A stretch of DNA of 45,138 bases from Octopus bimaculoides (taxonomy: Eukaryota), in contig NC_068982.1 of the NCBI RefSeq assembly GCF_001194135.2, positions 49,144,751 to 49,189,888 of the forward strand. Reading direction: 5' to 3'. The notes under the pieces are model-generated. The model made no database searches. It was not told the origin of the DNA and saw only the letters and a program-made list of their open reading frames with translations. The position numbers and the translations under genes are program-made. This document shows, one piece after another, positions 2,951 to 42,745 of this stretch. The stretch's first letter is position 1, and each line of letters opens with the position of its first letter.

Positions 2951-3941
2951 TTATATAGGTAACTACTACTACTACTACTAAATGACATCACATGAAAATG
3001 ATTACCCAAAAGGCGATCAGCCAAAAGGCGGCTGTTGCAGTGCATTATGGGATTAGTAGATTTTGTATCATCAGCACTTCACAATACGTGATTAGAGTAT
3101 TGAAGGAGGTGTTTCCTAGCATGCTTCGTTGCAGTTACAGTTAAGACTTGTGACTGTATTATCATGTCACTTTAATGTACTCTTTTGTACAAACATGGGG
3201 TAATAGTTACAGTGGTGTTGTTTCTAGTCGTGTATTAAAGTATTGCTACTTTTGGTGACACCCTTTGTAATAAAGGTAGTGCAGTCAGTGCTACGTACAA
3301 TGTAATGGCCTGCTTTAGTCACACACTATCCATGTGTAGTTGTAACAAGAAGGCATTGGTGTTGTTGAGGGCAACAAAGTACACTATTTGCTAATGCCAA
3401 CATTTGGACTAATTTCATGCTGATATCAAAATGGTCCTGTGGGCTGGATGAAATTGCTGCATGGGCCAGAAGTGGCCAGAGAGCCAGGAGTTTGACATAT
3501 AAAGCTTAGCAAAATGAAGGGCATCTATCTCTAAAACAATGCCTCAGTAAACTTATGCTAAAACTTCTCCCCACAAACTACATCTCTGTCTCTGTTCAAA
3601 CATCATCTCCCTTTCTTTCATGTTTCCTCTGTTTACTATATCATTACTATTCTGCTGCCTTTCATCTTTTGCCAGTCATTCCAACATTTATCATCAGTCA
3701 TCCTTGCACCCTTGTTCACAATACACTGCAAAGACCCCTTCATCTTCAACCTCTCTACAGTTTTCACCTACTCTCCCCTACTTTCTCTTCCACTCATTTT
3801 TACCATCAACCACATCTCTATCCTTGTTCTCCATAGAAACAGAAATATAAAGTTATACATTTGAGTATGCTACTAATATGTGTGTATGTAAATTTATGTA
3901 CAGCCAGTATCTGCATACACAAAAACTCATTCTTCTGCCAC

Positions 3942-3986
<45 letters not shown>

Positions 3987-4067
3987 TATACACATATACA
4001 TACATGGAGATTACAAATCTATAACCATACACAGTATATGAATGAAGTCAACAAACTCCCAAACTCT

Positions 4068-4920
4068 NNNNNNNNNNNNNNNNNNNNNNNNNNNNNNNNN
4101 NNNNNNNNNNNNNNNNNNNNNNNNNNNNNNNNNNNNNNNNNNNNNNNNNNNNNNNNNNNNNNNNNNNNNNNNNNNNNNNNNNNNNNNNNNNNNNNNNNNN
4201 NNNNNNNNNNNNNNNNNNNNNNNNNNNNNNNNNNNNNNNNNNNNNNNNNNNNNNNNNNNNNNNNNNNNNNNNNNNNNNNNNNNNNNNNNNNNNNNNNNNN
4301 NNNNNNNNNNNNNNNNNNNNNNNNNNNNNNNNNNNNNNNNNNNNNNNNNNNNNNNNNNNNNNNNNNNNNNNNNNNNNNNNNNNNNNNNNNNNNNNNNNNN
4401 NNNNNNNNNNNNNNNNNNNNNNNNNNNNNNNNNNNNNNNNNNNNNNNNNNNNNNNNNNNNNNNNNNNNNNNNNNNNNNNNNNNNNNNNNNNNNNNNNNNN
4501 NNNNNNNNNNNNNNNNNNNNNNNNNNNNNNNNNNNNNNNNNNNNNNNNNNNNNNNNNNNNNNNNNNNNNNNNNNNNNNNNNNNNNNNNNNNNNNNNNNNN
4601 NNNNNNNNNNNNNNNNNNNNNNNNNNNNNNNNNNNNNNNNNNNNNNNNNNNNNNNNNNNNNNNNNNNNNNNNNNNNNNNNNNNNNNNNNNNNNNNNNNNN
4701 NNNNNNNNNNNNNNNNNNNNNNNNNNNNNNNNNNNNNNNNNNNNNNNNNNNNNNNNNNNNNNNNNNNNNNNNNNNNNNNNNNNNNNNNNNNNNNNNNNNN
4801 NNNNNNNNNNNNNNNNNNNNNNNNNNNNNNNNNNNNNNNNNNNNNNNNNNNNNNNNNNNNNNNNNNNNNNNNNNNNNNNNNNNNNNNNNNNNNNNNNNNN
4901 NNNNNNNNNNNNNNNNNNNN
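4068..4920. other. Assembly gap (first of nine N-runs, most flanked by (AT)n/(AC)n microsatellites)
   Basis: N-run. The other gaps are listed in the summary. Confidence 0.99.
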
Positions 4921-5373
4921 TATACACGCACACATACACATACACTCACATACACATAAGTACATAGACAGATGCATATATATATGTAATGCATATCTTT
5001 ACACATATATATATATATATACACACACACACTCACATACATGCACATGCACATATATATTGTCATTTTATCTATGAGGCTACACTAAAGCACCAGTACT
5101 TCAGAAGCCCCTTTCTTTTGGGTTAATTACACCTGACATTTACGTTTTTGAAAGCTTTGTTGTGTCAACATATTTTGTTAATATTATATACACACACACT
5201 CACACATATGGGGTGGGGTTGGCCAAAAGTAAGTACACAGTTGCCTAATATGAGTGTAATGTTCTTTTCATTTCTCTATTCCGTTTTAAGGATAAGAATT
5301 CTATGATTCTATGTTCTTATTAGCCAATTCTTTGTAGTAAAGATTGTTTGCCAACATAACATGGCAGATCGTG

Positions 5374-5531
5374 TCATGTAGCCAGCTGGAGACAATGTCT
5401 CCTGGGGTTAAGTTATAGCAACATTCGTCCTAAAACCAGGACTGCCATGTTATGTTGGCAAACAATCTTTACTCCAAAGTACTGTTGCTGAATATCTCTT
5501 GTTGTGAGATTTAAAAATAGTAATTTTCTAA
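5374..5531 (+). repeat. Left copy of 158-bp direct terminal repeat (right copy 7736-7893)
   Basis: Ungapped alignment at offset 2362 with 10 mismatches in 158 bp (~94%). Confidence 0.95.
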
Positions 5532-5925
5532 TTTATAGATCAGTGACTAGTTGTCACTTTGAAAACAATATATTTCGAACATTCTTGTTGTTTTTTGAAG
5601 AATACTGAGTGAAATTTTTTTGTGTGAAGCTGCCATCGTTGGGTGGTAGTGAGTAATTGAAAAATGAAAAGTTACGTGGAGGCTACTGGAGGTCGAGCTC
5701 TCCTAGACCCACGTGTGCTGAAGCCAGAGATGATAGAGTGGAATGAGACGTTGATAACTAAATATTATGGTATGATAAAGAAAGAAAGGTCAAACTTGAA
5801 AATGACCCTGCCAGAGAAGGAAAATGGAAAACAAGACGGTTATATTCAGAACATTTTCAAATGTAAATAGGAGAAATGAACATGTACCACAGGAAGAGAT
5901 AGAAGTATAAGAATTGGATGAGATA

Positions 5926-6286
5926 TGACGGCTCAGCAGTCTCTCCCCAGTTCTTATATTAATCATTAAAATCCAGAAATACAACAACACGAGGGATAAC
6001 GGTAACAACAAATCAATACTTTATTCTAGGTTGGTGTAGAGCCGTTTCGTTCCTGGGTGAACAGGCATGCCGCTAGAATACCAAAGAAGCTTCGACCACA
6101 TGTCGGGGTCGAGTTGGGAGATACGTGTTGTCGCCACCGCTGCTAGAGAGAAAAAGAGGTCGGACGCTATTGCTTTCTCTCCACCTGTTGCATTGCGCAT
6201 GCGTGCTCGGGTACTTCCGCTGACGGCAAGTCCCTTGTACATGCACAATGGCACTGCCCAAGATGGCGGCCACACGCGCCACTACA
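5926..6286 (-). mobile_element. Solo LTR (probably Gypsy-type), CpG-rich and relatively young
   Basis: Minus strand starts TGTAGTGGCG and ends in CA (5926, or alternatively 5919). AATAAA at 6020-6025 (minus). Removing it restores the surrounding ORF. TSD not clearly recovered. Confidence 0.7.
6194..6270. promoter_or_regulatory. Cluster of NRF1-like, ETS-like, half-CRE and YY1-like motifs in the LTR U3
   Basis: TGCGCATGCGT 6194-6204; ACTTCCG 6213-6219; TGACG 6221-6225; AAGATGGCGGC 6260-6270. Motif match only. Confidence 0.45.
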
Positions 6287-7641
6287 GAAGAAATCTTGGA
6301 GAAACAAATAGGAGAAGAGATAACGTTCTGTAACGAGGATGGAAATATGCGTCGATAGCAGTAACCTTTGTATCAGAAGAGGAGGTGAAGAAAACCGACA
6401 ACAGGCTGATACAAGGAGGAAAATGGACGTTGATGCCAAATTTTTGGGGCTACGGACTAGAGATAATCTGTGCAGTGAGCCCAAAATATTACGAAGAAAT
6501 GGCAGAAACTTTAGAACTACCAAATGGGAGAAAAGCTGGAAATAATGTTGGAGAGGTGACCTCCAAAGTGTTACAAATGTGGTGAAAGAGGGCACTTGAG
6601 AAAGAAATGTCCTAGAGCAGCAGTGAAAATGGTAGAGGAGAGTGTTCAGGAAGATATAATGGTAGAAAAAAAAGCAGAAACAGAAAACAGGACATGAAGG
6701 GAATTTTGAAGAGGTGAAACCCAGAAAAAGAGAGAGAAGGAAGTCACCAACGAGAGTGGAATTAAAGAAGTTCAAAGCAATGGAAGAGGAAACTCAACCC
6801 ACGATGAGAAACGTAGAAGATTTACCAGTAGAATTACCAGTAAAGGACTTACAAGTACAGAGTCATTCAGACCAGCACACATTCAAACACATAGACATGC
6901 AAAGGCACACAAATAATAACGAACAGAAACAAGACAACCCAGAATTACAGAAACCTAAAGACATAGACACACAGACGAAACACGTAGAATTACAGTCAAA
7001 CAAACACACAGACACACAAATACACGGACACAGAGACACACAGATATAATCCCAAGAAAGCCCAAAATTACAGAAATATAAAGAAAAAAAGAGATAACAT
7101 GCAAAACACAAACAAAAAGAAAATTATAGTGAGATGCAGGACACCCCAAACTTAAAAGAATGCAAAATTGAAAGATACTGTGAGAGATTGAACCCACTGA
7201 GGCTGGAGGTGGATGTTGAACCTCGCACCTCGGTGGTGAATTACGTGGACAAAAAGGAAAAGATGAAGTGGTAAGTCGTAATTTAATTAGAAACTGTGAA
7301 AAACATTTGGCTGAACATTTTGGTTTAAAAAAAGGAAAAAGAAAAAAGTAAATCCTGTATGAACATTTGTTTAAAAAGTTTAAAATTGTAAGGTGAAAGT
7401 GAAAAGGAAATTGTGGTTTTGCCTTGGAGCAGGGCTAGAAATTGTTATGTAAAACGTAAAGGTCTAAAAGAAAAGGAATCCATGGTTTCATCTCGCAGTG
7501 GGAGCAAGATGACTGTCTCATTTGCATTGTAATTTTATTCATTTTATATTCATCCTATCATGTGTTTTTGTTCCTGCATGTCTGTGTATGTCACCTCTGT
7601 GTTTAGGCCTTGTGCCAGTAATAAAGATTTAACCTCTAGCC

Positions 7642-7704
7642 AAACAATTATTCTGTACTGATGAAGGGAAATAACCTGGAAATCACGATACACAGATATT
7701 GTTT
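7642..7704 (+). ncRNA. Type I hammerhead ribozyme (minimal stem III, probably decayed)
   Basis: CUGAUGA 7658-7664. Stem II GGG/CCU with loop AAAUAA. GAAA 7679-7682. Stem III AUC-AC-GAU and cleavage triplet AUA at 7688-7690. Stem I UCUGU/ACAGA plus AAACAAU/AUUGUUU around an internal loop. Confidence 0.65.
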
Positions 7705-8334
7705 TGAGCTGAATGAGAGTACTAGATTCTCTTGTTCATATAGTCAGCTGGAGACAATGTCTCCTGGGGCTAAATTACAGCAACATTCATCCTAAAACCA
7801 GGACTGCCATGTTATGTTGGCAAACAATCTTTACTACAAAGTACTGTTGCTGAATATCTCTCGTTGAGAGATTTAGAAATAGTAATTTTCTAAGCTAGTT
7901 CTTTCTATAATAAAATAAGTATTCCTAATTTCAGATATTTATGATATAGCTGGAAATTTGTCCTATGTTGAAAGAAAGTGGATCATCAAACAGTACTGGA
8001 AAACAGAGAATGCAGAAATGAACTGAAAAATTTCAACAGCCAGCTCCATCAAGATTAATAATTTACAGAATACATGACAAATTTGCATAGACTGGGCCAA
8101 TCTGCTACTCCCAGAAAAGTGTTCAACTAGTCAGTGTTACCACAAAACATAATAAAATGCGTGTGGCTCAAGCATTCGCTCAAAGAATCCAAAAATCAAA
8201 AAAGAAGGATTCCAATGAACTAGGCATCTCCTGTAGAGTCCTCAGTCAACTAATGAATCCCTTACCTAAAAAGGAAATCGAAAAATATAGAGAAACTGTA
8301 TACCTACTTTTGCCCATCTCCGTATATAAAAGTT

Positions 8335-8590
8335 AATGGTAAAGTTTCCTTCTTGGGCCATACCGAGTCATAAGGGCCAGTTTCCAAGTTTCCATGGCAT
8401 ATATATTCCCCACCTGGCCAGGACACAGGTCTGTCTCAGAATTATTCACTTTTGCCAGCTGAGTGAACTGGAGCAACGTGAAAGGAAGTATTTTGCTCAA
8501 GAACACAACGCGTTGCCCGGTCCAGGAATTGAAACCACAATCTTATGATCATGAATCCAACACCATAACTACTAAGCCATATGCCTCCAC
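8335..8590 (-). mobile_element. tRNA-derived CORE-like SINE
   Basis: Minus-strand head TGGCTTAGTAG (A box) and GGTTTCAATTCC (B box), then GTGTTCTTGAGCAAAATACTT...GCTCCAGTTCACTCAGCTGGCAAAA. Multiple homologous copies in the window. Confidence 0.85.
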
Positions 8591-8743
8591 TATCCCTGTA
8601 TATATGTATGGGTTGTCCCAAAAGTATTGCTAAAGTGGGTTTAAGGTTTTTACGAACTGACATGGTTCATTCAAATTGCCCACGCTAAATAAACTAACTC
8701 ATTCTCTATAGTAAACTCTTTTTCTTGTTCTTCTTCATTACAG

Positions 8744-9003
8744 ACAAATATATTCTTCCAAGCATAGACATCATGAAGATCTTGATAAAGTGTACAGACT
8801 ATCCAGCAACTACAAGAGGCTACAGTTTCTTTAAAGAGTTAGCACCATTGACAAGCGTATTGTGCATAGAAGGAATGGAAAAACCAGCTCCAGCTTTGAA
8901 GATTAAACATACAACAGTAGATCAACTACTACAACCACTAACATATATTGCCAACAAATGGATAAATTGGTTTCCTGTCCCCACCCATTTCTACTCACCT
9001 TGA
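8744..9003 (+). CDS. Candidate terminal coding exon of an unidentified gene: (D)KYILPSIDIMKILIKCTDYP...ANKWINWFPVPTHFYSP*
   Basis: Strong acceptor ttcttgttcttcttcattacag at 8743, followed by an ~86-codon open frame in AT-rich DNA. No strong internal donor. No homology recognised. Confidence 0.55.
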
Positions 9004-9087
9004 ACCTTGAGGCTCCAGACTGTCAGCTCATCACCATTTTATCTCTTTCCAACTCCACTCTAGTCACTAACATTTTTTCTTCTTTAA

Positions 9088-9269
9088 CCCTTTAGCATTC
9101 AATTTACCCTGTCAAATGTAAAGCTTATTTATTCACATTGTTTTGAAATAATCATGGATTGTCTTGTAGCTTTGAAATATTGATGATGTGCCAGGCTGGA
9201 TTTGGCAGGTTTCAACATAAACTAGGTAAAATATTTGGGCTGAGTAAGGCCAGTTTAAATATTAAAGTG
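9088..9269. mobile_element. TTAA-flanked piggyBac-like MITE
   Basis: TTAA at 9084-9087 and 9270-9273. Termini CCCTTTAGCATT / AATATTAAAGTG match at 9/12 as inverted repeats. Confidence 0.6.
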
Positions 9270-9485
9270 TTAATGTTAGTAGCCATGTAGTTCTTCTACA
9301 ACAAGTAGACTGTTTAGTTCTGGCCCATTTTCTCATACTTTATTCCTTCATCCCTCTCTCTTCTGTAGTTCCATTCAGTCAAAGTGATCTGATCTTAATC
9401 TAGCAAACTGCATGGTGGCCTCACTAGTGTTGGTGCCATAGAAAAGGCACTCCATCGGTTATAATGAGTGTTCTAGATGATCCGG

Positions 9486-9744
9486 TTAACAGAACAGCCT
9501 GCTCGTGAAATTAACGTGCAAGTGGCTGAGGACTCCACAGACACACATTCCCTTAACGTAGTTCTCAAGGAGATTCAGCATGACACAGAATGAATTACAA
9601 GTACTACTCATTTTTGCCAGCTGAGTGGACTCGAGCAATGGGAAATGAAGTGTCTTGCTTAAGGACACAATGTGCTGCCAAGTATTGAACTCACGACCTA
9701 ACAAAGGTGAGCTGAATGTCCTAACTACTGAGTGACACACCTTC
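9486..9744 (-). mobile_element. tRNA-derived CORE-like SINE
   Basis: Shares the ttttgccagctgagtggact..gagcaa..gaaatgaagtgtcttgct core with the copies at 8335 and 33930. Confidence 0.8.
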
Positions 9745-9837
9745 ACTAAATGATGATAACACACACACACACAAACACATATACACACATAAGCACACAG
9801 AGGCATATATATATACATTATTAAGCAGCATTTTTTT

Positions 9838-10136
9838 TTTATGCACCCTTTTAAAGCCTAGCCAGGCTCATGGGCCCGGTTTCTATGGCGTATGTGTTAC
9901 CCTCCCCCCTCAGCTGGATGGGAAGCCAGTCCATCGCAGCTTTACTCAAGAAACAGGAAGAAAGAGCGAGAGAAAGTTGGGGCGAAAGAGTACAACAGGG
10001 GTTGCCACCACTCCCTGCCAGAGCCACGTGAAGCTTTAGGTGTTTTCGCTCAATAAACATACACAACGCCTGGTCTGGGAATCGAGACCGCGATCCCCCG
10101 ACCGCGAGTCCACTGCCCTAACCACTGGGCCATTGC
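9838..10136 (-). mobile_element. tRNA-derived SINE, well preserved and CpG-rich
   Basis: Minus-strand head GCAATGGCCCAGTGGTTAGGGCAGTGGACTCGCGGTCGGGGGATCGCGGTCTCGATTCC (A and B boxes). Confidence 0.8.
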
Positions 10137-10848
10137 AACTCCACAAGCAGCATATACATGTACATTTAATTGTTCACATGCTGCAGTTTTATGTTTTGTA
10201 TGAGCTGTTGGTTACATTCTTATAAAAACTTCATATCTATCTAATTCTATGCATACGTATATAGATACTTAAACACTTCTATATTTATGCATGCTTTCAT
10301 ACATATATGCATATATACATACATACATTCATAACATACAGATCCATACAAACATACCTTATCAACATATGCATACATTTATACATACAAATATACAATC
10401 ATATATACATTACATAACATGTACACATAGATACACAATATATTATATATTTGTATGTATGTATGTATGTATGTATACATATATATATATATATATACAT
10501 ACACGTATGAACAAACATACATGCACATATACATCTATGGCTGTATGTGTCTATCTGATTTATAAACAGAAGTGATGTTATCCTTCAATGAAAAGAGCAA
10601 CCTTGTTGTTTGCTCTTCTTTTTCAACTTATCAGTGATAAAACACATATAAAATGTCTTTAATCTCCACTATTCTTTTTGATGTCTTTCTCATGTTTCAT
10701 ATTTTTCTTTTTTTTTTCCTTGGTTCTATATATGCTTATATAAATGCATATGTATACGTGTGTATATGTCTAAATATACATACATATTTATATATTTTTA
10801 TTTGTGTATGTGTATATATATATATATATACATACACAAATAAAATAC

Positions 10849-10905
<57 letters not shown>

Positions 10906-11698
10906 NNNNNNNNNNNNNNNNNNNNNNNNNNNNNNNNNNNNNNNNNNNNNNNNNNNNNNNNNNNNNNNNNNNNNNNNNNNNNNNNNNNNNNNNNNNNNNN
11001 NNNNNNNNNNNNNNNNNNNNNNNNNNNNNNNNNNNNNNNNNNNNNNNNNNNNNNNNNNNNNNNNNNNNNNNNNNNNNNNNNNNNNNNNNNNNNNNNNNNN
11101 NNNNNNNNNNNNNNNNNNNNNNNNNNNNNNNNNNNNNNNNNNNNNNNNNNNNNNNNNNNNNNNNNNNNNNNNNNNNNNNNNNNNNNNNNNNNNNNNNNNN
11201 NNNNNNNNNNNNNNNNNNNNNNNNNNNNNNNNNNNNNNNNNNNNNNNNNNNNNNNNNNNNNNNNNNNNNNNNNNNNNNNNNNNNNNNNNNNNNNNNNNNN
11301 NNNNNNNNNNNNNNNNNNNNNNNNNNNNNNNNNNNNNNNNNNNNNNNNNNNNNNNNNNNNNNNNNNNNNNNNNNNNNNNNNNNNNNNNNNNNNNNNNNNN
11401 NNNNNNNNNNNNNNNNNNNNNNNNNNNNNNNNNNNNNNNNNNNNNNNNNNNNNNNNNNNNNNNNNNNNNNNNNNNNNNNNNNNNNNNNNNNNNNNNNNNN
11501 NNNNNNNNNNNNNNNNNNNNNNNNNNNNNNNNNNNNNNNNNNNNNNNNNNNNNNNNNNNNNNNNNNNNNNNNNNNNNNNNNNNNNNNNNNNNNNNNNNNN
11601 NNNNNNNNNNNNNNNNNNNNNNNNNNNNNNNNNNNNNNNNNNNNNNNNNNNNNNNNNNNNNNNNNNNNNNNNNNNNNNNNNNNNNNNNNNNNNNNNNN

Positions 11699-11729
<31 letters not shown>

Positions 11730-12487
11730 GCACACAGACACATGAACATTGGAGAACAGAAAATTTGAAACTGCATACATACAAGCGAAGAAAAAAACAA
11801 CTTTTTTTTATCCTAAAGCTAAAATTCCATTGTTATAAGCAAATGAATCAATCACTTGTACAGGAACTTTATTCTATGACATGAACAGGTTACACTTTTA
11901 GATGAGAGTACGATATATTTATGGGTGGTATAACTTGTAAGACAATGGTGCTTCTTGTGTCCTTGCCAAGTATCAGCTAATGATGAAAGTTGATGCGATA
12001 TAAAAGAAAACATTTCCCTCTTATACCGCCCCAGGTTGTTGACTTTCTAGATTGAATAAAACTATTTAATTTCTTTTATTTGTTTTTAATGTTTGTTTTT
12101 ATTTTCTTTCATCAATTCTTTTATCTTTTATAGCTTGTTGTTGTTGATTTTATGTCTGTTTTTTTCTTTTACTGTTGTTGCAAGAAAGGAAATTTAATTC
12201 CTAAATCATTTATTGAACTGAGTGTAGAAAGGAATAATAATATTCATATTCTCATATTTTGGGTTTTCTCTTTGCTTTATTCCATCCTTAGAACCTTCAG
12301 AATATATATATATATATATATACGTTTGCAGATATGTACACGTATACATACGTGCATATATATATATATATACACATAATAGTATTGAGTAGTGAGAACA
12401 AGCGCTCAAAACTGCATTTGGTGGATAAATATTCTTTATTTATGGATTAACAGTGTTACCAATGGTTTTGTGTGGAAAAATTTCACA

Positions 12488-12666
12488 GGCGTAAGAGTGG
12501 CTGTGTTGTAAGTAGCTTGCTTACGATCCATAGGGTTCCGGGCTGAGTCCCACTGCGTGGCACCTTGGGCAGGTGTCTTCTACTATAGCCTCGGGCCGAC
12601 CCAAGTGGCTGAGGACTCCACAGCCACACATTCCCTTAACGTAGTTCTCAAGGAGATTCAGCATGA
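12488..12666 (+). mobile_element. Chimeric SINE: head of one family fused to a 65-bp piece of another
   Basis: 12488-12601 matches the SINE heads at 48 and 35693. 12602-12666 matches 9519-9583 with one mismatch. Confidence 0.8.
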
Positions 12667-13134
12667 ACCCCCATGTTGCCTGCTCTAGAATTGCCTGGTT
12701 AAGAGTTCATATGGTTACAGGAACACTACAGGACACTATGTTATGGTATGTATGAGCATGTTACAGTAGTGAGGTTGAGAACACAAAGGTGCATAAAACA
12801 TCCCCACAAGAACCAAAACTAAAGTGAAGATGACTGACTTCCCATTAGTTTTGAAGTGTTTGGGTGATCCCCCTGGGACACATTCCCTAGCTTCTAATCA
12901 TGGCCAAAGGTTGAAACAGAGTGAAAATTATTTGACATGAAGGTTCAGGAGAAAACATTACATACTGTGACATCATAAGGATAATTTGAACCAAAACTTT
13001 TTGAACTACATCAATGATTCTTAATTTTGTACACAAACACAGAAACATGAGTACATGCACATTTATGCGTACATACACCTACATGTATATGCATATTATA
13101 TCTGCATTTATATCAATATGTATATCTATCTATC

Positions 13135-13526
13135 TTTTATCTTTGTGTTTCAGTCATTAGACTGTAACCATGCTGGAGTACCACCTTGAAGAATTCTTGT
13201 AGTCAAATGAATTAGCCCAGTACATCTTTTAAGCCTGGTACTCATTCTATCAGTCTCTTTTGCCGAACTGCTAAGCTACGAGGACATAAACAGACTTACA
13301 CCGATTACTTAAAAGTGCTGGGGGACAAACAGACACAAAGATATACCCAGATATACTTATATATGAATGGCTTCTTTCAGTTTCCATCTACCAAATCCAC
13401 TCACACGGCTGTGGTCAGCTCAAAGCTATAGTAGAGGACACTTTCCCAAAGTGACATGCAGTGGGATTGAACCCAGAGCCAAGTGGTTGGTAAGCAAGTT
13501 TCTTACCACACAACCACACCTGCACC
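13135..13526 (-). mobile_element. Full-length tRNA-derived SINE with internal simple repeat
   Basis: Homologous to 35693-36033 (+), 30505-31025 (-) and 32870-33032 (-). Confidence 0.8.
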
Positions 13527-15467
13527 TATATATAAAAATAGATAGATAGATAGGTAGATAGATAGATAGATATGCATACATGTTAATATATATGATGCAC
13601 ACAAACACACACACACACACACACACACATGTATATACACATACCTACAACTATGTAACAATCTTTCTGTCTTTTGCTTGCTCTATCCATCTCTATCTAT
13701 CTATCTATAGTACTCACTAGGTTATATGTTTGTTTGGAAACTGAAAATCTTTCACAATATCTTTAGAGTCTGACTGAAATGGTTGAGGGCTAACTGATTC
13801 ATTAATTAATTGATTAATTATGCAAAAGCATCTAAAATGATTATAATTTTGAATGAATGTATGAAACTACATCGACTTCATGTTGTAGTCTAACATACAT
13901 ACGAGTGTGTGTATGTGTGTTTGCTTAATACATGCATTTATCAGAGAGTAATTTGTTGTGTATGTGACAGTGGCAAAAGCTTTCTCTTAATATATCTACG
14001 ATTGTGTCAGAATGAATAACCCTTCTCTTCAGAGCCTGAAGATACTCTGGTCTTCAACAATTATTGATAGTCTACAAATATCAGCTGGGGCTCGCATTAA
14101 AATATTGCTCTCACATTTTGAACTATGGGGGTTCATCCAGAAATCAGCCACTCACCTGATTAGCTCCAGCCCCTATTCAATAATCCAATTATCACTTCTC
14201 TGACTTTTTGTAACTAACACTATAATGGCCTTTGCACTCTGGAGCTAGCTGGGTTCAGGCTGTCTCTATTCAAGTATTCATGTCAACTTGTTTCTCTTCT
14301 TCTTATCTCATTTGTTTTATTGAACACATCCAGGTCTCTCCATAATCACTACACCCAGTACTTTGTTCCAAGAATGCTGGTCTTCTGTATTTTCCCCCTT
14401 GGTCATATATTTACCATAGGTGTTGGCTTATTCAATTGGAACTTTAATGGCCTCAATGTCATGGAAATCTAGGAGAGCCTGTAAAGGCCATGGGCGCTGT
14501 CCTTTGTCCTGACCTAACAGATAAAGTAGTTTTTCTCTCTGTTAGAGATGTCATACAATATCTCCCTCGTTGGTTCAACTGGTATAAATATAAACACAAA
14601 GCAGTACGATATGATTTGAGGATGAATTGGTTAATATTTCTAAGAGGTTGGGCTATGAAATAGTTGTCCATTTCTGGCTTAAACACATATACATACACAA
14701 TTTTCTACATGATGTAAGAGAGACTTGACTGCTATGTAGAGCAGATCTGTTGATGATAGAGAGATCTCCCTCTTTGACTCAGGCATAGAGACTGAGATAA
14801 CTATCTGCTTGTATGCCCAGATAATGAATATGTTAAAATAAATTCAAATATGAAATAGGAGCAGCGCTGGTGTAAGAGATAAGAGAGTAAGATGCTTATG
14901 GTTTGAAGAAGATATGGCTGCTATTTCTAATACTTCAAGCTAACACCCTGTTGATCTCCAGTCAGATCAATTGTATATGTAAACATAAAGAGAGTGAGAT
15001 TGATTTGAAGGAATCTCCCCTCAGCTGGCTCATTCTTGAATATCACAAAGCCATGCTTGAGCAAGCAAAATGGAAAGAAACATAGAATTTCATAAAAATT
15101 TTGGTGAAGTCCAGATAACAGCAAGTACCATTCCCATTTCATGGTTAATTGGTGAACACTAGAAAAGTGCATCAAGCTGTAAAAATTATTTGCTCTGATA
15201 AAAGGTAAATGTCTAAATTTGCAAAACCCATCTAACTTATGCAATTACAAAAGACAAAAACTAAAAAAGAAAACTAAAAATATGTTTAAAAAATGTAAAT
15301 GGCAAATATGTATATATTCTATGAATTAATTTTACTGAGTTTTTGTACTGATATAAGGTAGCTATGTAAAGAATTGATCTTTTGTTTAATGTAACAAAAT
15401 ATTGTGTTAATGAATTCAACCAGGCGTGAATTAATAAAGAGTTATTTTTTAAATATATGTGTGTGCG

Positions 15468-15515
<48 letters not shown>

Positions 15516-15516
<1 letters not shown>

Positions 15517-16065
15517 TAGCAGGTATACCTGGCGTTGCCCAAGTTAAAGAGAATAGAGAAATTTTAAAATGCCATCTAGATTACACAGGTCTCAGCTGCT
15601 AGTAATAACTCTCCAACCCATGCCAGCATAGAACTTAGAGGTTAGGTGAAATGTTAAAAGAAAGTTTCCAACTCATATATGTATATAAAGTAAATACACG
15701 TAATTCAAAAACTCGTTTTGGGTAGCTTATTTCATGACCAAAACACCAGGTACAGATTATAAACAATGAAAGGCTGATTTTGGTGATTCATTTGACAGGG
15801 GTAGTAGAGAGTCAATCCAATGATAAATCCGACTTGGATCTTGAAAGTTTGCAAGAATCCTGGCTCAGTTAAATTTCTTGTGGCTTCAAATGATTTCACC
15901 TGTAGTGCAGCGTTGTATTGTCTAATTTTTGTTGGGGAAGTGCTTGGAATCTTGATCAGTTGATGACAATAATTTCTTCAATAGCTCTGGAGATTGGGGG
16001 ATTTGCAAAGAGTTTAACCTTTCCACCACTGCAGCACAGTGCAGGTGTCTCTCCAGGCCAGTTAT
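15516..16065 (-). mobile_element. Helitron relic: N-terminal RepHel fragment plus 3' terminus
   Basis: Minus-strand WPGETPALCCSGGKVKL..PSPELLKKLLSS..DSKHF...FQDPSRIYHWIDSLLP at ~15790-16065 resembles the Helitron_like_N region. Minus-strand 3' end has a degenerate GC-rich hairpin (15527-15542) followed by CTAG (15516-15519), abutting (AT)n. Confidence 0.75.
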
Positions 16066-17115
16066 AGTTTATGCAATAAACTGAGGGATGAGAAAAAATA
16101 TAAGCAGTTTGTAAAGGAATTTTGAAATGAACTGATATTTATTTGAGTGTGCTGAAGATCTTAAATTATAACAGAAAAATATATAATAGATATATATTGA
16201 GGGAAATGTGATTCCCTAACAGACTGGATGGTCATGATTGGAATGACTGTAATGATAGGTTTGATGAAAAAATACTGATCTAGGAGTTAAACAACAGCAA
16301 CAACACTCGATATTTTGACACCAACCTCAAAATTAAATGAATCTTAACATTCTTGTCAATTGTTTACTGATATCTCATTCCAAAATGGATAACTGGCATT
16401 TTCAATGGCACTATTTAAAGGGAATCTTTCATTTTCCAATGGATATTTTCTCCAAGCTCAACACAATTTACAAGGAATATGTGAACTGCAACAAAAAACG
16501 GAAAAAAAATCGAAGAAAAACTAATGTCTTTTCACCCATAACAAGCAAGTTCATAACTTCAGTTTGCTCTGTTCTAATAAGAGCTAACAAAATGTGGTTG
16601 ATTTTGTTTGCAGTTATGTTATTGTTTGTAGAATGTTATGGTGAATTAAAAGAACAAAAATAAAATTATCTGATAAGGATGTAATTAATTTGCTGTCAGT
16701 TGAAAAGAAATACTCTATAAACCAATGCATACATAATTTTGAATCATCTTGAATTTTAATTGTTCAGACTGTTTATCAAAACAAGCGGTACTAAGTGATG
16801 TACAAATGAACACAAAAAAATATACAAAAATGCAAAAGGAAATAACATACAAATGCCGTCTTAATACATTACTGGTTTAGTTAGTGTTCATATTTGCAAC
16901 TGACATAGATGTCACAACAAATTAATTTCTTGACATTATAGACAATACCTTTTGCAAAAATCTGATACTTTCAAGGTCACCTGTGATAAGAAGAGTTAAG
17001 AAGCTAACAAGGGTATCAAGACTTTCCATTATAAGAGTTTCAGCATTTTAAATCAGTACTCTTTTATAGTTCATGGGTTCTGATTTTATCAGTATGTTAA
17101 AGGTTCATAATAATG

Positions 17116-17555
17116 ATCATTATCAGTGGGTCTGACAGAATTTCTTTGGACTACAAGGGTAGCATTACAAAGGAACTACTGGGATTCCATAAGAAAAAGG
17201 AAAAACACCTTACCTGGGGCCTGTTCTTGGAGGGCAACTTTTCAGAGATAGAGGTGCAGATTCATAGACTAATGTGACATAAAGAGGAAGAAATTGCATA
17301 TAATCATTATCAGTGGGTCTGACAGAATTTATTTGGACTACAAGGGTAGCATTACAAAGGAACTACTGNNNNNNNNNNNNNNNNNNNNNNNNNNNNNNNN
17401 NNNNNNNNNNNNNNNNNNNNNNNNNNNNNNNNNNNNNNNNNNNNNNNNNNNNNNNNNNNNNNNNNNNNNNNNNNNNNNNNNNNNNNNNNNNNNNNNNNNN
17501 NNNGTGCAGATTCATAGACTAATGTGACATAAAGAGGAAGAAATTGCATATAATC
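17116..17555. repeat. Tandem duplication with a 187-bp period; second copy broken by a gap
   Basis: atcattatcagtgggtctgacag at 17116 and 17303. The unit end recurs after the gap at 17504. Confidence 0.85.
17214..17268 (-). CDS. Candidate 55-bp exon (x)YESAPLSLKSCPPRTGP(R/S)
   Basis: Acceptor tttcttcctctttatgtcacattag and donor CAG|gtaagg. Single open frame (phase 1 to 2). Short, so it could be chance. Confidence 0.35.
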
Positions 17556-17580
17556 TAGGAAGTATTTTCTGAAAGTATTA

Positions 17581-18456
17581 CGAAGTTAATCCCAAAAGTA
17601 AGGTCTCCAAAGTGCTGGGGATGCAGGAAAACTGAGCGTGTGGCTATTGAAAACACTGTTGTGTTTGTTGTGCATGCACCTGAGCTTGCCCCTGCACTCA
17701 CCTCACTGCTATGCTCAGTCTTGGTTTAGCAGTCGTATCTGATGGCGCTCCTGATTGATGCTACCACCAAGTGTGAAGCTCATGCAGTTATTTGGTTTTT
17801 GAATGCAAAAGGCATTAAAACCAAGTGAAATTCATTGCCAATTAATAGAAGTGCATAGTGAGTCATGTATGGATGTCAAAAACGTCCACAAGTAGTGTAG
17901 GGAGTTTGCAGCTGGTGTACTGAAATTCATGATGAAGAAAGAAGCGGGTGACCATCAATTTCCAACAAGACAGTCACGATGGTTGAGCAGATCTTGCATG
18001 AAAATCAGCAAATCACCCTGGATGATCTCTGCATTTTGGTTCCTGAGGTTTCCCTTTGAGTGAAAGGTTGCAATATCGGAAGGTGTGTACATTGTAGGTT
18101 CCACGAATGCTCACAGAAGACCATATATGGCAACCCACCTTATAGTCCGAACTTGACACTCAGTGACTACCACCTGTTCCCTAAGTTGAAAAAACATTTG
18201 GCCAGAATGTGCTTTCAGCAATGATGACAAGGTGAAAGATGAGGTTCAATGCTTCCTCGACAACATGGTGGTGAGCTGGTATGATATGGGCATGTAAAAA
18301 CTGCCCCAGCATCTACAAAAAGGCATCGACTGAAATGGTGATTATGTAGAAAAATAGATAAAGGTTCAAACTTTAAAATGATATAAACATCATTGACAAT
18401 AAACTTTTCTGTGATTTCTAAATGTTTTTGGAGACCTTACTTTGGGATTACTCTTG
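17581..18456 (+). mobile_element. Mariner (DD34D-type) element, internally deleted
   Basis: ~31-bp TIRs cgaagttaatcccaaaagtaaggtctccaaa / tttggagaccttactttgggattactcttg, with TA on both sides. Transposase remnant 17742-18357 contains VPRMLTED and PPYSPNL..SDYHLFPKLK..NGDYVEK*. Confidence 0.92.
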
Positions 18457-41679: not shown

Positions 41680-42745
41680 AGATGTCTTGCAAACAACTTG
41701 CACATGCAAGTGCTACCAGTTGATAGCTCCGCATACCGGGAGCCAGCAAGTGTATGGGGTCATCAGGAGAGAATGTGCGCCACTTCAGGGCCTACCTCTC
41801 GACGGCATCAATGTGCCCCCCTCACTGATATGAAGCCCTGCCTGCTAGATCAACTGGTTATTAAATATAGCTCAACATTTCTCTAGCCATCGCTCATCGT
41901 CTTTTTTTAACCAAATCCAGTGGCTAGCCTTCTCCACTGTAGCTTGGATATCACTCATGGTGGTATTTACCTTACGATGATTTAGGCCTAATGATAACAA
42001 CAGTCGTCTCACACTGTGTCCAACAAACCCTCTACATTTGAATTCGATTGGAAACTGCTCCGCTTTCCAGTCTGCATCTATACATTCCTCGAGGAGGTTT
42101 ACATAATGGTCAATTTTTTGAGCCTGCACTGCGTCCATGTTATCTTCATGAGGAACAGTGAATTCGACTAGATTTACAACTTTCTTTCTTTCACACCACA
42201 TTAAAATGTTCAGTTTTTTTGTAAATGGGATGGGAAAGAGTCCCTGGCACCCTGGTAAATCTGCAGTCACCTCCCAATAGCCGCTCCACTTTTCATCTCT
42301 CACAGGAAGTTTCTTGTTCTTCTTCTTGAAATGGATCCGCTGATCTGAGTGCACGAAGGTAATGAAATCTCTAGTTGGTACTTTCAACAGTTTTTTCTCT
42401 GTGTTGTTGAGATGAATTTGGTTATAAGAAGATAACCTTAAGGACCAGGTTGTGTCTCCATGTATACCTGTTCAATGCTAAAGAACAGTTGGAAAGAATA
42501 TGTTTCAGTGTTCTGACCTTTCCGCATTTGCATATATCATTCTCTGAAACTTTCCATCTTACTAGATTTGTAGGTGATGGCAAAACATCATAGGATGAAC
42601 GAATAAGAAAACTTAGCGGAGATGTGGTCCACGTCTATATCTCATCCCAACTTATTTTCCTCTCAACAACTTGTTCTTCCCATCTCGTCATCTGTCCTTG
42701 TTGAATACATCAGATCAAATAAAGCTTTCTTCTCTCTGCTTCTCT
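41680..42745 (-). mobile_element. 5'-truncated RLE-type non-LTR retrotransposon (HERO-like)
   Basis: QGQMTRWEEQVVERKISW..SPLSFLIRSSYDVLPSPTNLVRWK..CKCGK..LKHILSNC..RYTWRHN (CCHC finger). Then the open 41872-42387 frame with NILMW..VNLVEFTVPHEDN..KIDHY..FPIEFKCRGF..EKASHWIW (restriction-like endonuclease). Confidence 0.88.

Follow-up and report, generated by a model that had tools for sequence, protein, structure and literature searches.

The segment at positions 5330–7893 of the window, that is, the whole 45,138-nt stretch of Octopus bimaculoides DNA that was analyzed (NC_068982.1), is best explained as a single insertion of an old and now dead non-autonomous retrotransposon, whose family is probably a HAL1-like half-LINE, derived from an L1-type (L1/Tx1-like) LINE and representing an invertebrate counterpart of mammalian HAL1. 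According to this half-LINE reading, an L1-type LINE would have lost its ORF2, with the endonuclease and the reverse transcriptase (RT), while its 5'UTR, its ORF1 gene, and the LINE 3'UTR end would have been retained, therefore leaving a "half-LINE." Judged from sequence comparisons, the ORF of the octopus family is indeed homologous to the ORF1 of autonomous LINEs, which is the relationship expected of a HAL1-type element.

Structure of the Insertion and Variation of Its Ends

Four paralogous copies from Octopus vulgaris (L001, L002, L003, and L005) were found to be collinear with the window copy, L001 sharing 73–78% nucleotide identity with it and L002 being a 5'-truncated fragment. On the plus strand, the window copy comprises a left direct repeat (5374–5531), which corresponds to the 5'UTR of a 5'-truncated unit and aligns with homologous segments of L001 and L003; the stretch between that repeat and the ATG, which completes the 5'UTR (5532–5663, collinear with L001 9226–9391); a disrupted ORF1-type gene (5664–7274); a 3'UTR (7275–7632) with an AATAAA signal at 7620–7625 that is kept in all copies, and whose last ~65 nt (7565–7632) form a block shared with LINEs; a junction between the end of this first unit and the start of a partial second one (7633–7735), which holds a hammerhead-like motif; and a right direct repeat (7736–7893), interpreted as 5'UTR sequence belonging to this partial second unit. 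The two repeats are 158 nt long and 94% identical. The left one is preceded by an inverted 5' piece (5330–5367, minus strand), the reverse complement of repeat positions 69–106, which matches 7804–7841 at 100% and 5442–5479 at 97% and forms with the latter a fold-back enclosing a 74-nt loop. The direct terminal repeats, the inverted 5' piece, and the poly(A) signal had all been proposed in an initial annotation of the window, and these parts of it are borne out.

The ends of the insertion differ from copy to copy. An inverted 5' piece is present in all four full-length copies with a different junction in each, and left ends fall at four positions relative to the repeat start (~+1, +10 to +19, ~+45, and ~−100). 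The right end of the repeat is variable too: the window copy runs 59 nt past the point where L001 and L003 stop, and L005 has no right repeat. None of the four full copies stops at a LINE-like 3' terminus, all of them entering a second unit and covering 38 to ~230 nt of it, and a one-sided extension is seen in 3/3 insertions, with the short end at repeat position 99–106 and the long end at 157–162. The 38-bp inverted match is found only in the window copy, and a TIR DNA transposon was rejected on that basis.

A target-site duplication (TSD), previously put at ~11 bp, does exist exactly at both junctions, albeit as an imperfect 12-nt one: the left copy AGCCAATTCTTT (5322–5333, its last 4 nt overlapping the inverted piece) and the right copy AGCTAGTTCTTT (7893–7904), both on the plus strand, match at 10/12 positions, which is weak on its own as ~7% of random flank pairs reach an equal score. 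L001 displays an analogous 12-nt duplication, also with 10/12 matches and exactly at its junctions, L005 is flanked on both sides by (TA)n, and L003 has (TA)n at its left and TG/TA-rich sequence at its right, such that every copy with both ends resolved shows a target duplication of its own or sits in a microsatellite target. These variable and imperfect TSDs (window copy, L001), together with the (TA)n flanks of L003 and L005, the 5' truncation of L002, and the differing left ends, are hallmarks of target-primed reverse transcription. DIRS/Ngaro elements were rejected, given that TSDs are present and no recombinase is found. If the 158-bp repeats were short LTRs, the insertion would be a TR-GAG-like element of the LTR type with gag only, and its gag-like CCHC ORF between direct terminal repeats is consistent with that, but the repeats neither start with TG nor end with CA, direct reading reveals no PBS or polypurine tract adjoining them, the TSD is of ~12 bp and not 4–6, the right repeat end varies by copy and is missing with its repeat in L005, and the ORF belongs with LINE ORF1 rather than with retroviral Gag; this explanation is barely credible.

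The ORF is interrupted by a later, nested insertion of 377 bp (5905–6281, minus strand), flanked by the 5-bp TSD AGAAG (5900–5904 and 6282–6286). This insertion is missing from L001, L002, and the other copies, the empty site being thus visible in a paralogue, and it reads TG...TA on the minus strand. The nested insertion itself is confirmed, and it may be a solo LTR, as it was described earlier; no second copy of it was found in the window or the compared loci.

An ORF1-Type Gene Shared with LINEs

The single disrupted ORF announced by the initial annotation was confirmed by mapping it with tblastn against intact homologues (P0004, P0005, and P0006), which delimited a gene at 5664–7274 made of an N-terminal segment, an RRM-like domain, a second RRM-like domain that is mostly deleted in the window copy, a CCHC knuckle, a low-complexity linker, and a C-terminus ending in ...VVNYVDKKEKMKW before the stop codon. 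Along the plus strand, it is broken by a +1 frameshift near 5812–5831, the 377-bp insertion (5905–6281), a stop near 6331, a deletion of ~45–51 codons near 6440, a frameshift near 6530, a stop in LER*PPKC, a frameshift near 6690, and stops near 7047 and 7090. The CX2CX4HX4C knuckle previously noticed (~6566–6610) is supported by Pfam (zf-CCHC, E 1.1e-5), and so is the RRM-like segment by structure prediction: an AF2 model with a pLDDT of 72 exhibits a beta-alpha-beta-beta-alpha-beta topology, and its top Foldseek matches are all RRM proteins (the single-sequence AF2 model only reached a pLDDT of 35 and was unusable). On these predictions, the architecture of the ORF1 protein is "Jockey-like," with one or two RRM domains followed by a CCHC knuckle. 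Compared with the Jockey-like (RRM + CCHC) ORF1 proteins of non-LTR retrotransposons, the octopus ORF adds a conserved N-terminal segment (MKSYAEA...) and a C-terminal motif (..FP.DVG/NPLG..) and matches zf-CCHC as its sole Pfam family. Searching Pfam and PDB with the ORF sequence revealed nothing but the zinc knuckle, the Pfam search of the other window ORFs gave no match, exact look-ups of the 111-aa ORF of the window, P0002, P0006, and P0014 retrieved no contig, and a word-indexed protein search with a 13-member profile yielded 2 proteins only, this search being probably swamped by low-complexity words.

When the ORF2 of a related LINE served as tblastn query, no RT was detected in any part of the window, in agreement with what had been reported from inspection, and ORF2 remnants are absent from all five copies (tblastn on the window, L001, L002, and L005; direct reading of L003). 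Because all four collinear O. vulgaris paralogues are devoid of ORF2, the RT-less form is a family in its own right and not a one-off deletion, as supported by sequence from the five sampled copies through which it is known; these lie at different loci and fall into at least three diverged subfamilies. The proposal of an RT-less, non-autonomous family with an ORF1/Gag-like RRM + CCHC protein thus withstands the comparison. Two further loci, L004 (a 2.2-kb ENA contig) and L007 (a 1.7-kb Logan contig), show no terminal structure or ribozyme. One could also envision a domesticated, ORF1-like host gene, the copies being retrogenes or segmental duplicates, insofar as L003 and L005 retain intact ORFs of 257 and 379 aa, both annotated as proteins, and ORF-only contigs of a homologue recur across several sequencing runs. 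However, the copies occupy unrelated loci, where they show the same noncoding ends, fold-backs, and junctions with a TSD or a microsatellite, stops and frameshifts disrupt most of them, and the same ORF is the ORF1 of intact LINEs, which makes a host gene very improbable.

The link with LINEs is apparent from the homologues of P0004, which matches 122 representative clusters. Two of these matches lie in loci where the ORF directly precedes an ORF2: L006 (O. sinensis CM016872.1), whose ORF2 carries Exo_endo_phos, RVT_1, and zf-RVT, and L011 (O. vulgaris OX597840.1), whose ORF2 is intact (1132 aa) and has human LINE-1 ORF2p as its best match (E 2e-71). The RT-less ORFs match the ORF1 of L011 in BLASTP with E values of 1e-19 and 3e-28. 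An RT between the CCHC ORF and the 3' end, which would have turned the window copy into a simple deletion derivative had other copies carried it, is not seen within the family and only occurs in distant relatives; the nearest autonomous LINEs found share ~30% ORF1 identity only, and none is closely related. The octopus LINEs L006 and L011 have in common with the half-LINE family a homologous ORF1 with RRM-like domains and a CCHC knuckle, an ORF1 stop codon inside GTAAGT, and a 3'UTR terminal block with AATAAA. This block aligns with the 3' end of the L006 LINE with a local score of 35 that no shuffle equals (0/500), and with the L011 LINE at a score that 8/500 shuffles reach, bearing in mind that the compared LINEs are distant and that the insertions continue 38 to ~230 nt past the block. 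They differ from the half-LINE family by their ORF2 (APE-RT-zf-RVT), by unrelated 5'UTR sequences, and by the lack of an inverted 5' copy at their left edges, none being seen at that of the L011 array or of the L006 LINE save a 21-nt palindrome; L006 ends in (ATT)n. An apparent match between CTGATGAAGGG and the LINE junction CACTGATAAGGACG was dismissed as positional only, because 5'UTR homology between the half-LINE family and the LINEs is not significant.

Also relevant to the ends of the octopus family, L011 consists of at least three LINE units arranged head to tail, with the 3' end of one abutting the next 5'UTR (the tandem junction reads ...AATAAAATAAAACACTGATAA directly followed by GGACGTTAC), an arrangement that resembles the partial tandem of the half-LINE. 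Because this LINE relative forms head-to-tail arrays, the terminal repeats of the window copy can be read as a partial second unit. Instead of LTRs, they would then reflect a 5'-truncated unit followed by the first ~230–260 nt of a second, partial one, an arrangement that may have arisen from a template RNA transcribed off tandemly arrayed units, or else through an RT that left one RNA at its 5' end and resumed at the 3' end of another. As to the inverted piece, its form [inv(a..b)][x..a−1][a..b] could result from a finished first-strand cDNA that folds back and primes the second strand.

A Hammerhead-Like Motif and Penelope-Like Ends

The initial annotation had favored another scenario, in which the RT of a Penelope-like element (PLE) mobilizes the family in trans, a functional minimal hammerhead processes its RNA, and the family supplies its own nucleocapsid-like chaperone. 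The ends of the insertions do match published hallmarks of PLEs, namely a pseudo-LTR (pLTR) in the form of a partial tandem, an adjacent inverted 5' copy (here in 4/4 copies), and an extension at one end only (here in 3/3) (PMC8557442). PLEs and their non-autonomous derivatives (animal retrozymes, MRC1 of Chlamydomonas, and Chlamys-2_cBra) share with the octopus family these three features as well as variable TSDs, microsatellite targets such as the (TA)n beside two copies, and a 3' string resembling a hammerhead core (PMC8557442; bioRxiv 10.64898/2026.07.22.740005). Moreover, the PLE Chlamys-2_cBra has a gag-like zf-CCHC ORF upstream and a hammerhead at its 3' end, and many Penelope families exist in Octopus (PMC13282606). 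These PLE-like end structures stand against the half-LINE reading, which leaves them unexplained.

The motif itself (helix I 7651–7657/7691–7696, CTGATGA 7658–7664, GAAA 7679–7682, plus strand) carries in the window copy all 11 core nucleotides of a hammerhead near the 3' end, with UA at 7689–7690 and a nominal cleavage after 7690, and a three-helix fold can be drawn, as had been claimed. A descriptor built post hoc to fit it would be matched by chance ~0.03 times in random sequence as long as the window, and helix II pairing is maintained by different bases in three copies. Nevertheless, the fold needs mismatches, with an A.G at 10.1/11.1 that leaves the closure of helix II non-canonical and unpaired and an A.C at 2.1/1.1, and the candidate passes a relaxed descriptor only. 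The Rfam hammerhead has no match at E<=10 in the window, L001–L003, or L005, and Rfam searches at gathering threshold and E<=10 on the window, L001–L003, L004, and L005 gave nothing but noise, from microsatellites or from hairpins scored as "miRNA." The folding energy does not stand out (z = −0.9), and core nucleotides are paired in the minimum-energy fold. The core is complete in the window copy only, the others reading GACA (L001), AAAA (L002), TTGATAA (L005), and tentatively CTGGAGT (L003), and the intact LINE relative reads CTGATAA at a comparable place.

Furthermore, the motif is not part of the repeat: it sits 45 nt upstream from the right one, has no counterpart in the left one, and occurs once per unit. 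None of the four left-end positions coincides with the predicted cleavage site at −45, which speaks against the suggestion that self-cleavage generates the 5' end of the template RNA. Neither the window nor the compared loci show a PLE RT, no GIY-YIG domain turned up, and the Penelope connection is further weakened by the gene and the 3'UTR end, both homologous to those of L1-type LINEs with an APE-RT ORF2, and by the tandems that a LINE relative forms as well. Altogether, the hammerhead is most likely fortuitous, being neither canonical nor conserved, and mobilization by a PLE RT with a functional ribozyme seems unlikely.

Retrozymes are small and noncoding elements. A combined scenario can be conceived in which Penelope-type integration goes with a working hammerhead assembled at the head-to-tail junction in the subfamily of the window copy: one unit would contribute the CUGAUGA box with its 3' tail, the following unit the GAAA box and the helix I partner with its 5' start, and multimeric transcripts would be self-processed. 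We consider this highly unlikely; if true, it would make the family the first protein-coding, retrozyme-like element, made from LINE parts.

Comparison with Mammalian HAL1

In mammals, HAL1 ("half-L1") is a derivative of the L1 clade that keeps the 5'UTR-ORF1-3'UTR layout without ORF2 and spreads as its own family (PMC5753468). The octopus family resembles it in being non-autonomous, in having kept 5'UTR-ORF1-3'UTR and lost ORF2, and in forming a family of its own. It departs from HAL1 by its ORF1, which has the RRM + CCHC ("Jockey-like") architecture when mammalian L1 ORF1 is of the coiled-coil/RRM/CTD type, by the lack of a poly(A) tail, by insertions that are partial tandems with a 5' fold-back, by the distance (~30% ORF1 identity) to the nearest autonomous relatives found, and by its cephalopod host. 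On the half-LINE reading, the ORF1 protein would bind the RNA that encodes it, and a related autonomous LINE would provide, in trans, the ORF2 protein that inserts a copy by target-primed reverse transcription; the family is probably mobilized by a LINE RT.

These results matter for annotation, as several Octopus "uncharacterized protein" models are ORF1 remnants of this family. They may also matter for the classification of transposable elements, which could be misled by the association of a partial tandem, a 5' fold-back, and long/short ends mimicking supposed PLE diagnostics; because they mimic features held to be diagnostic of Penelope-like elements, these odd ends merit a proper census. 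From an evolutionary perspective, half-LINEs, so far known as mammalian HAL1, would also have arisen and diversified in cephalopods, where an intact ORF1 long kept without ORF2 fits the idea that an RNA chaperone of its own may help such an element to compete for a borrowed RT.

An RT-less, ORF1-only family in Octopus

The window sequence is AT-rich animal DNA with plentiful microsatellites and assembly gaps, and the initial annotation correctly delimited within it an element (5330-7893) that lacks a reverse transcriptase (RT) and encodes only an ORF1. Comparison with intact homologues confirmed one disrupted ORF with a CCHC knuckle, namely a single gene running from 5664 to a stop at 7272-7274, whose zinc knuckle (KCYKCGERGHLRKKC) matches zf-CCHC. 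The gene carries at least four stops and three frameshifts, has lost about 45-51 codons near 6440, and is interrupted by a 377-bp insertion (5905-6281) that is flanked by a 5-bp target site duplication (TSD; AGAAG, 5900-5904 / 6282-6286) and found in none of the paralogues. This insertion is plausibly a solo LTR, as its minus strand runs TG...TA and contains an AATAAA; a search of the window, L001, and L002 gave no other copy. In the intact homologue P0004, the N-terminal MKSY... and NKTVIF... segments share one reading frame, which marks the +1 shift of the window copy and of L001 as damage. As first noted, the window lacks any detectable RT, and a tblastn search using the ORF2 of a related LINE gave no match there. 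Elsewhere in the window, several ORFs of 110-170 aa (1196-2752 and 41872-42387, minus strand) look transposon-like by eye; Pfam matches none of them.

Word-indexed protein searches returned relatives from Octopus only, one ENA contig excepted, which places the window in an octopod genome. They also led to four further copies on four O. vulgaris chromosomes: L001, collinear with the window copy from one terminal repeat to the other and 73-78% identical to it in nucleotides; L002, a 5′-truncated fragment; and L003 and L005, with intact ORFs of 257 and 379 aa. The ORFs differ at up to about 50% of their amino acids, and at least three old subfamilies must therefore exist. The same 3′UTR directly follows the ORF in all copies, leaving no RT ORF between the CCHC ORF and the 3′ end, and tblastn with the related LINE ORF2 found no match in the four loci testable, L003 being covered by direct reading of that locus. 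The RT-less form is thus a family and not a lone copy. As for the proposed linkage of ORF, hammerhead, and terminal repeat, the ORF and 3′UTR occur together in all copies, but the hammerhead core is incomplete in the other copies (tentatively so in L003) and L005 has no right repeat. A 294-aa homologue (P0011) was also observed on near-identical 1.7-kb contigs from at least six sequencing runs (L007-L010, Logan SRR11869384-94); these contigs contain no RT and possibly represent an expressed ORF1-only element elsewhere.

P0004 matched 122 representative clusters when searched exhaustively with HMMER, and the long members of this set have no RT domain. When modelled by AF2 from 13 homologues (pLDDT 72), residues 61-133 form a beta-alpha-beta-beta-alpha-beta unit followed by a second alpha/beta unit, and the best Foldseek matches are RRM proteins (e.g., nucleolin, La, and RBM28), with probabilities up to 0.99 yet E-values of only about 0.03, in keeping with the RRM-like segment initially proposed. 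The family ORF, with its RRM-like unit(s) followed by a CCHC knuckle, thereby resembles the "Jockey-like" ORF1p of non-LTR retrotransposons, which consists of one or two RRMs and then a CCHC knuckle (PMC3905857).

Autonomous LINE relatives and a shared 3′UTR block

For two homologues the genomic surroundings could be established, and each proved to be the ORF1 of a complete LINE. At L006 (O. sinensis), the ORF precedes reading frames with Exo_endo_phos, RVT_1, and zf-RVT; at L011 (O. vulgaris OX597840.1), a 503-aa ORF1 precedes an intact ORF2 of 1132 aa that carries these three domains too and, among solved structures, best matches human LINE-1 ORF2p (E 2e-71, vs. 1e-24 for R2). BLASTP aligns RT-less ORFs with L011 ORF1 over ~210-220 residues (E 1e-19 and 3e-28). 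Moreover, the last ~65 nt of the window 3′UTR (7565-7632, ...TGTATGTCACCTCTGTGTTTAGGCCTTGTGCCAGTAATAAAGATTTAA) align to the extreme 3′ end of the L006 LINE, a score that 0 of 500 shuffles equalled (8 of 500 for the weaker alignment to L011). From this ORF1 homology and shared 3′UTR block, it follows that the element body is the 5′UTR-ORF1-3′UTR of an L1-type LINE without ORF2. Mammalian HAL1 has the same design, being an L1-type LINE that lost ORF2 (PMC5753468), and the window element is a cephalopod analogue of HAL1. Its assignment to the Penelope/hammerhead world was thus mistaken, as ORF1 and the 3′ block are LINE-derived and the hammerhead is unsupported.

The ORF1 stop codon lies inside GTAAGT in the L006 LINE and inside GGTAAGT in the window (7268-7276) and at the ORF ends of L001, L003, and L005. 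This sequence resembles a consensus splice donor, and the donor-like site is kept in the RT-less copies. In the L006 LINE, a polypyrimidine tract comes next and an AG stands just 5′ of the ORF2 ATG, so that the ORF1-ORF2 spacer (~53 nt, at 9803-9860) is intron-like; a gene predictor used GTAAGT as a donor.

A hammerhead-like motif and Penelope-like ends

That the hammerhead-like motif of the window once cleaved appears improbable. The motif has all core nucleotides and admits helices of 5, 3, and 2 bp; three copies maintain helix II pairing despite base differences, and the core would return in a majority consensus of the four copies. However, the fold needs A.G at 10.1/11.1 and A.C at 2.1/1.1; a strict descriptor rejects it (a relaxed one, written to fit the motif, gives ~0.03 matches per random window); Rfam hammerhead models match neither the window nor any other copy at E<=10; and the minimum-energy fold, of ordinary energy, pairs part of the core. 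At the homologous position, L001 has GACA for GAAA, L002 AAAA, L005 UUGAUAA for CUGAUGA, and L003 tentatively CUGGAGU. The intact LINE unit junction reads CUGAUAA. The motif lies outside the repeat, once per unit, at the inferred two-unit junction, and neither end of any copy falls at the nominal cleavage site, contrary to the suggestion that self-cleavage produced the 5′ end.

Mobilisation of the family by the RT of a Penelope-like element (PLE) is unlikely but retains some weight. PLE insertions typically show partial tandems, adjacent inverted 5′ copies, and one-end extensions (PMC8557442), a list matched by the end structures of the family: each of three partial-tandem insertions has one "short" (repeat position 99-106) and one "long" (repeat position 157-162) junction (window 5330 and 7893; L001 9029 and 11282; L003 ~9331 and 11779), reminiscent of the one-sided PLE "tail," the window copy carrying its long end on the right, L001 and L003 theirs on the left. 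A PLE combining a gag-like zf-CCHC ORF1 with a 3′ hammerhead, Chlamys-2_cBra, is also on record. Against this, the conserved LINE 3′ block points to a LINE RT, as does a LINE relative that occurs in tandem.

Tandem units, variable ends, and inverted 5′ copies

This relative is the apparently intact L1-type LINE of L011, where at least three units stand head to tail (3447-18280, period 5284 nt). At the unit junction, the 3′ end ...AATAAAATAAAACACTGATAA abuts the next 5′UTR, GGACGTTAC..., with which the left edge of the array also coincides; an assembly gap obscures the right side. Except among telomeric or rDNA-specific elements, LINEs seldom form tandem arrays. The 158-nt direct repeats of the window copy (5374-5531 / 7736-7893) were recovered as annotated, at 94% identity. 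By analogy with the L011 array, the window sequence beyond the conserved 3′ block (which ends at 7632) and about 33 further nt is best read as entering a partial second unit, the "right repeat" probably being its 5′UTR.

The ends vary. Relative to the repeat start, left ends fall at about +1 (window), +10 to +19 (L001), about +45 (L005), and about -100 (L003); right ends fall at repeat position 158 (window) or 99 (L001 and L003), and only about 38 nt beyond the unit boundary in L005. At the window junctions, the proposed TSD (AGCCAATTCTTT / AGCTAGTTCTTT) is exactly placed and L001 has its own 12-nt duplication of the same kind (10/12), but taken alone the window duplication is weak, because 7% of random flank pairs score equally. 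Both flanks of L005 are (TA)n (5570-5625, 7723-7750), L003 has (TA)n on the left (9280-9330) and TG/TA-rich sequence on the right, and the L006 LINE sits between (ATT)n tracts (7725-7780, 13352-13385), which suggests microsatellite-biased integration or microsatellite-like tails.

The inverted 5′ piece also stands: 5330-5367 matches 7804-7841 (38/38) and 5442-5479 (37/38) in reverse complement. Indeed, all four full copies start with an inverted duplicate of the form inv(a..b), x..a-1, a..b, with loops of a few to about 100 nt, as would arise if completed first-strand cDNA folded back as its own primer. In L005 (5688-5806) and L003 (9359-9811), the inverted and direct copies form long, near-perfect hairpins, which Rfam scores as miRNA precursors (mir-2012, E 3.5e-6, below gathering). 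Elements with such hairpins could yield hairpin-derived small RNAs, and the family stands out chiefly for this unusual insertion architecture.
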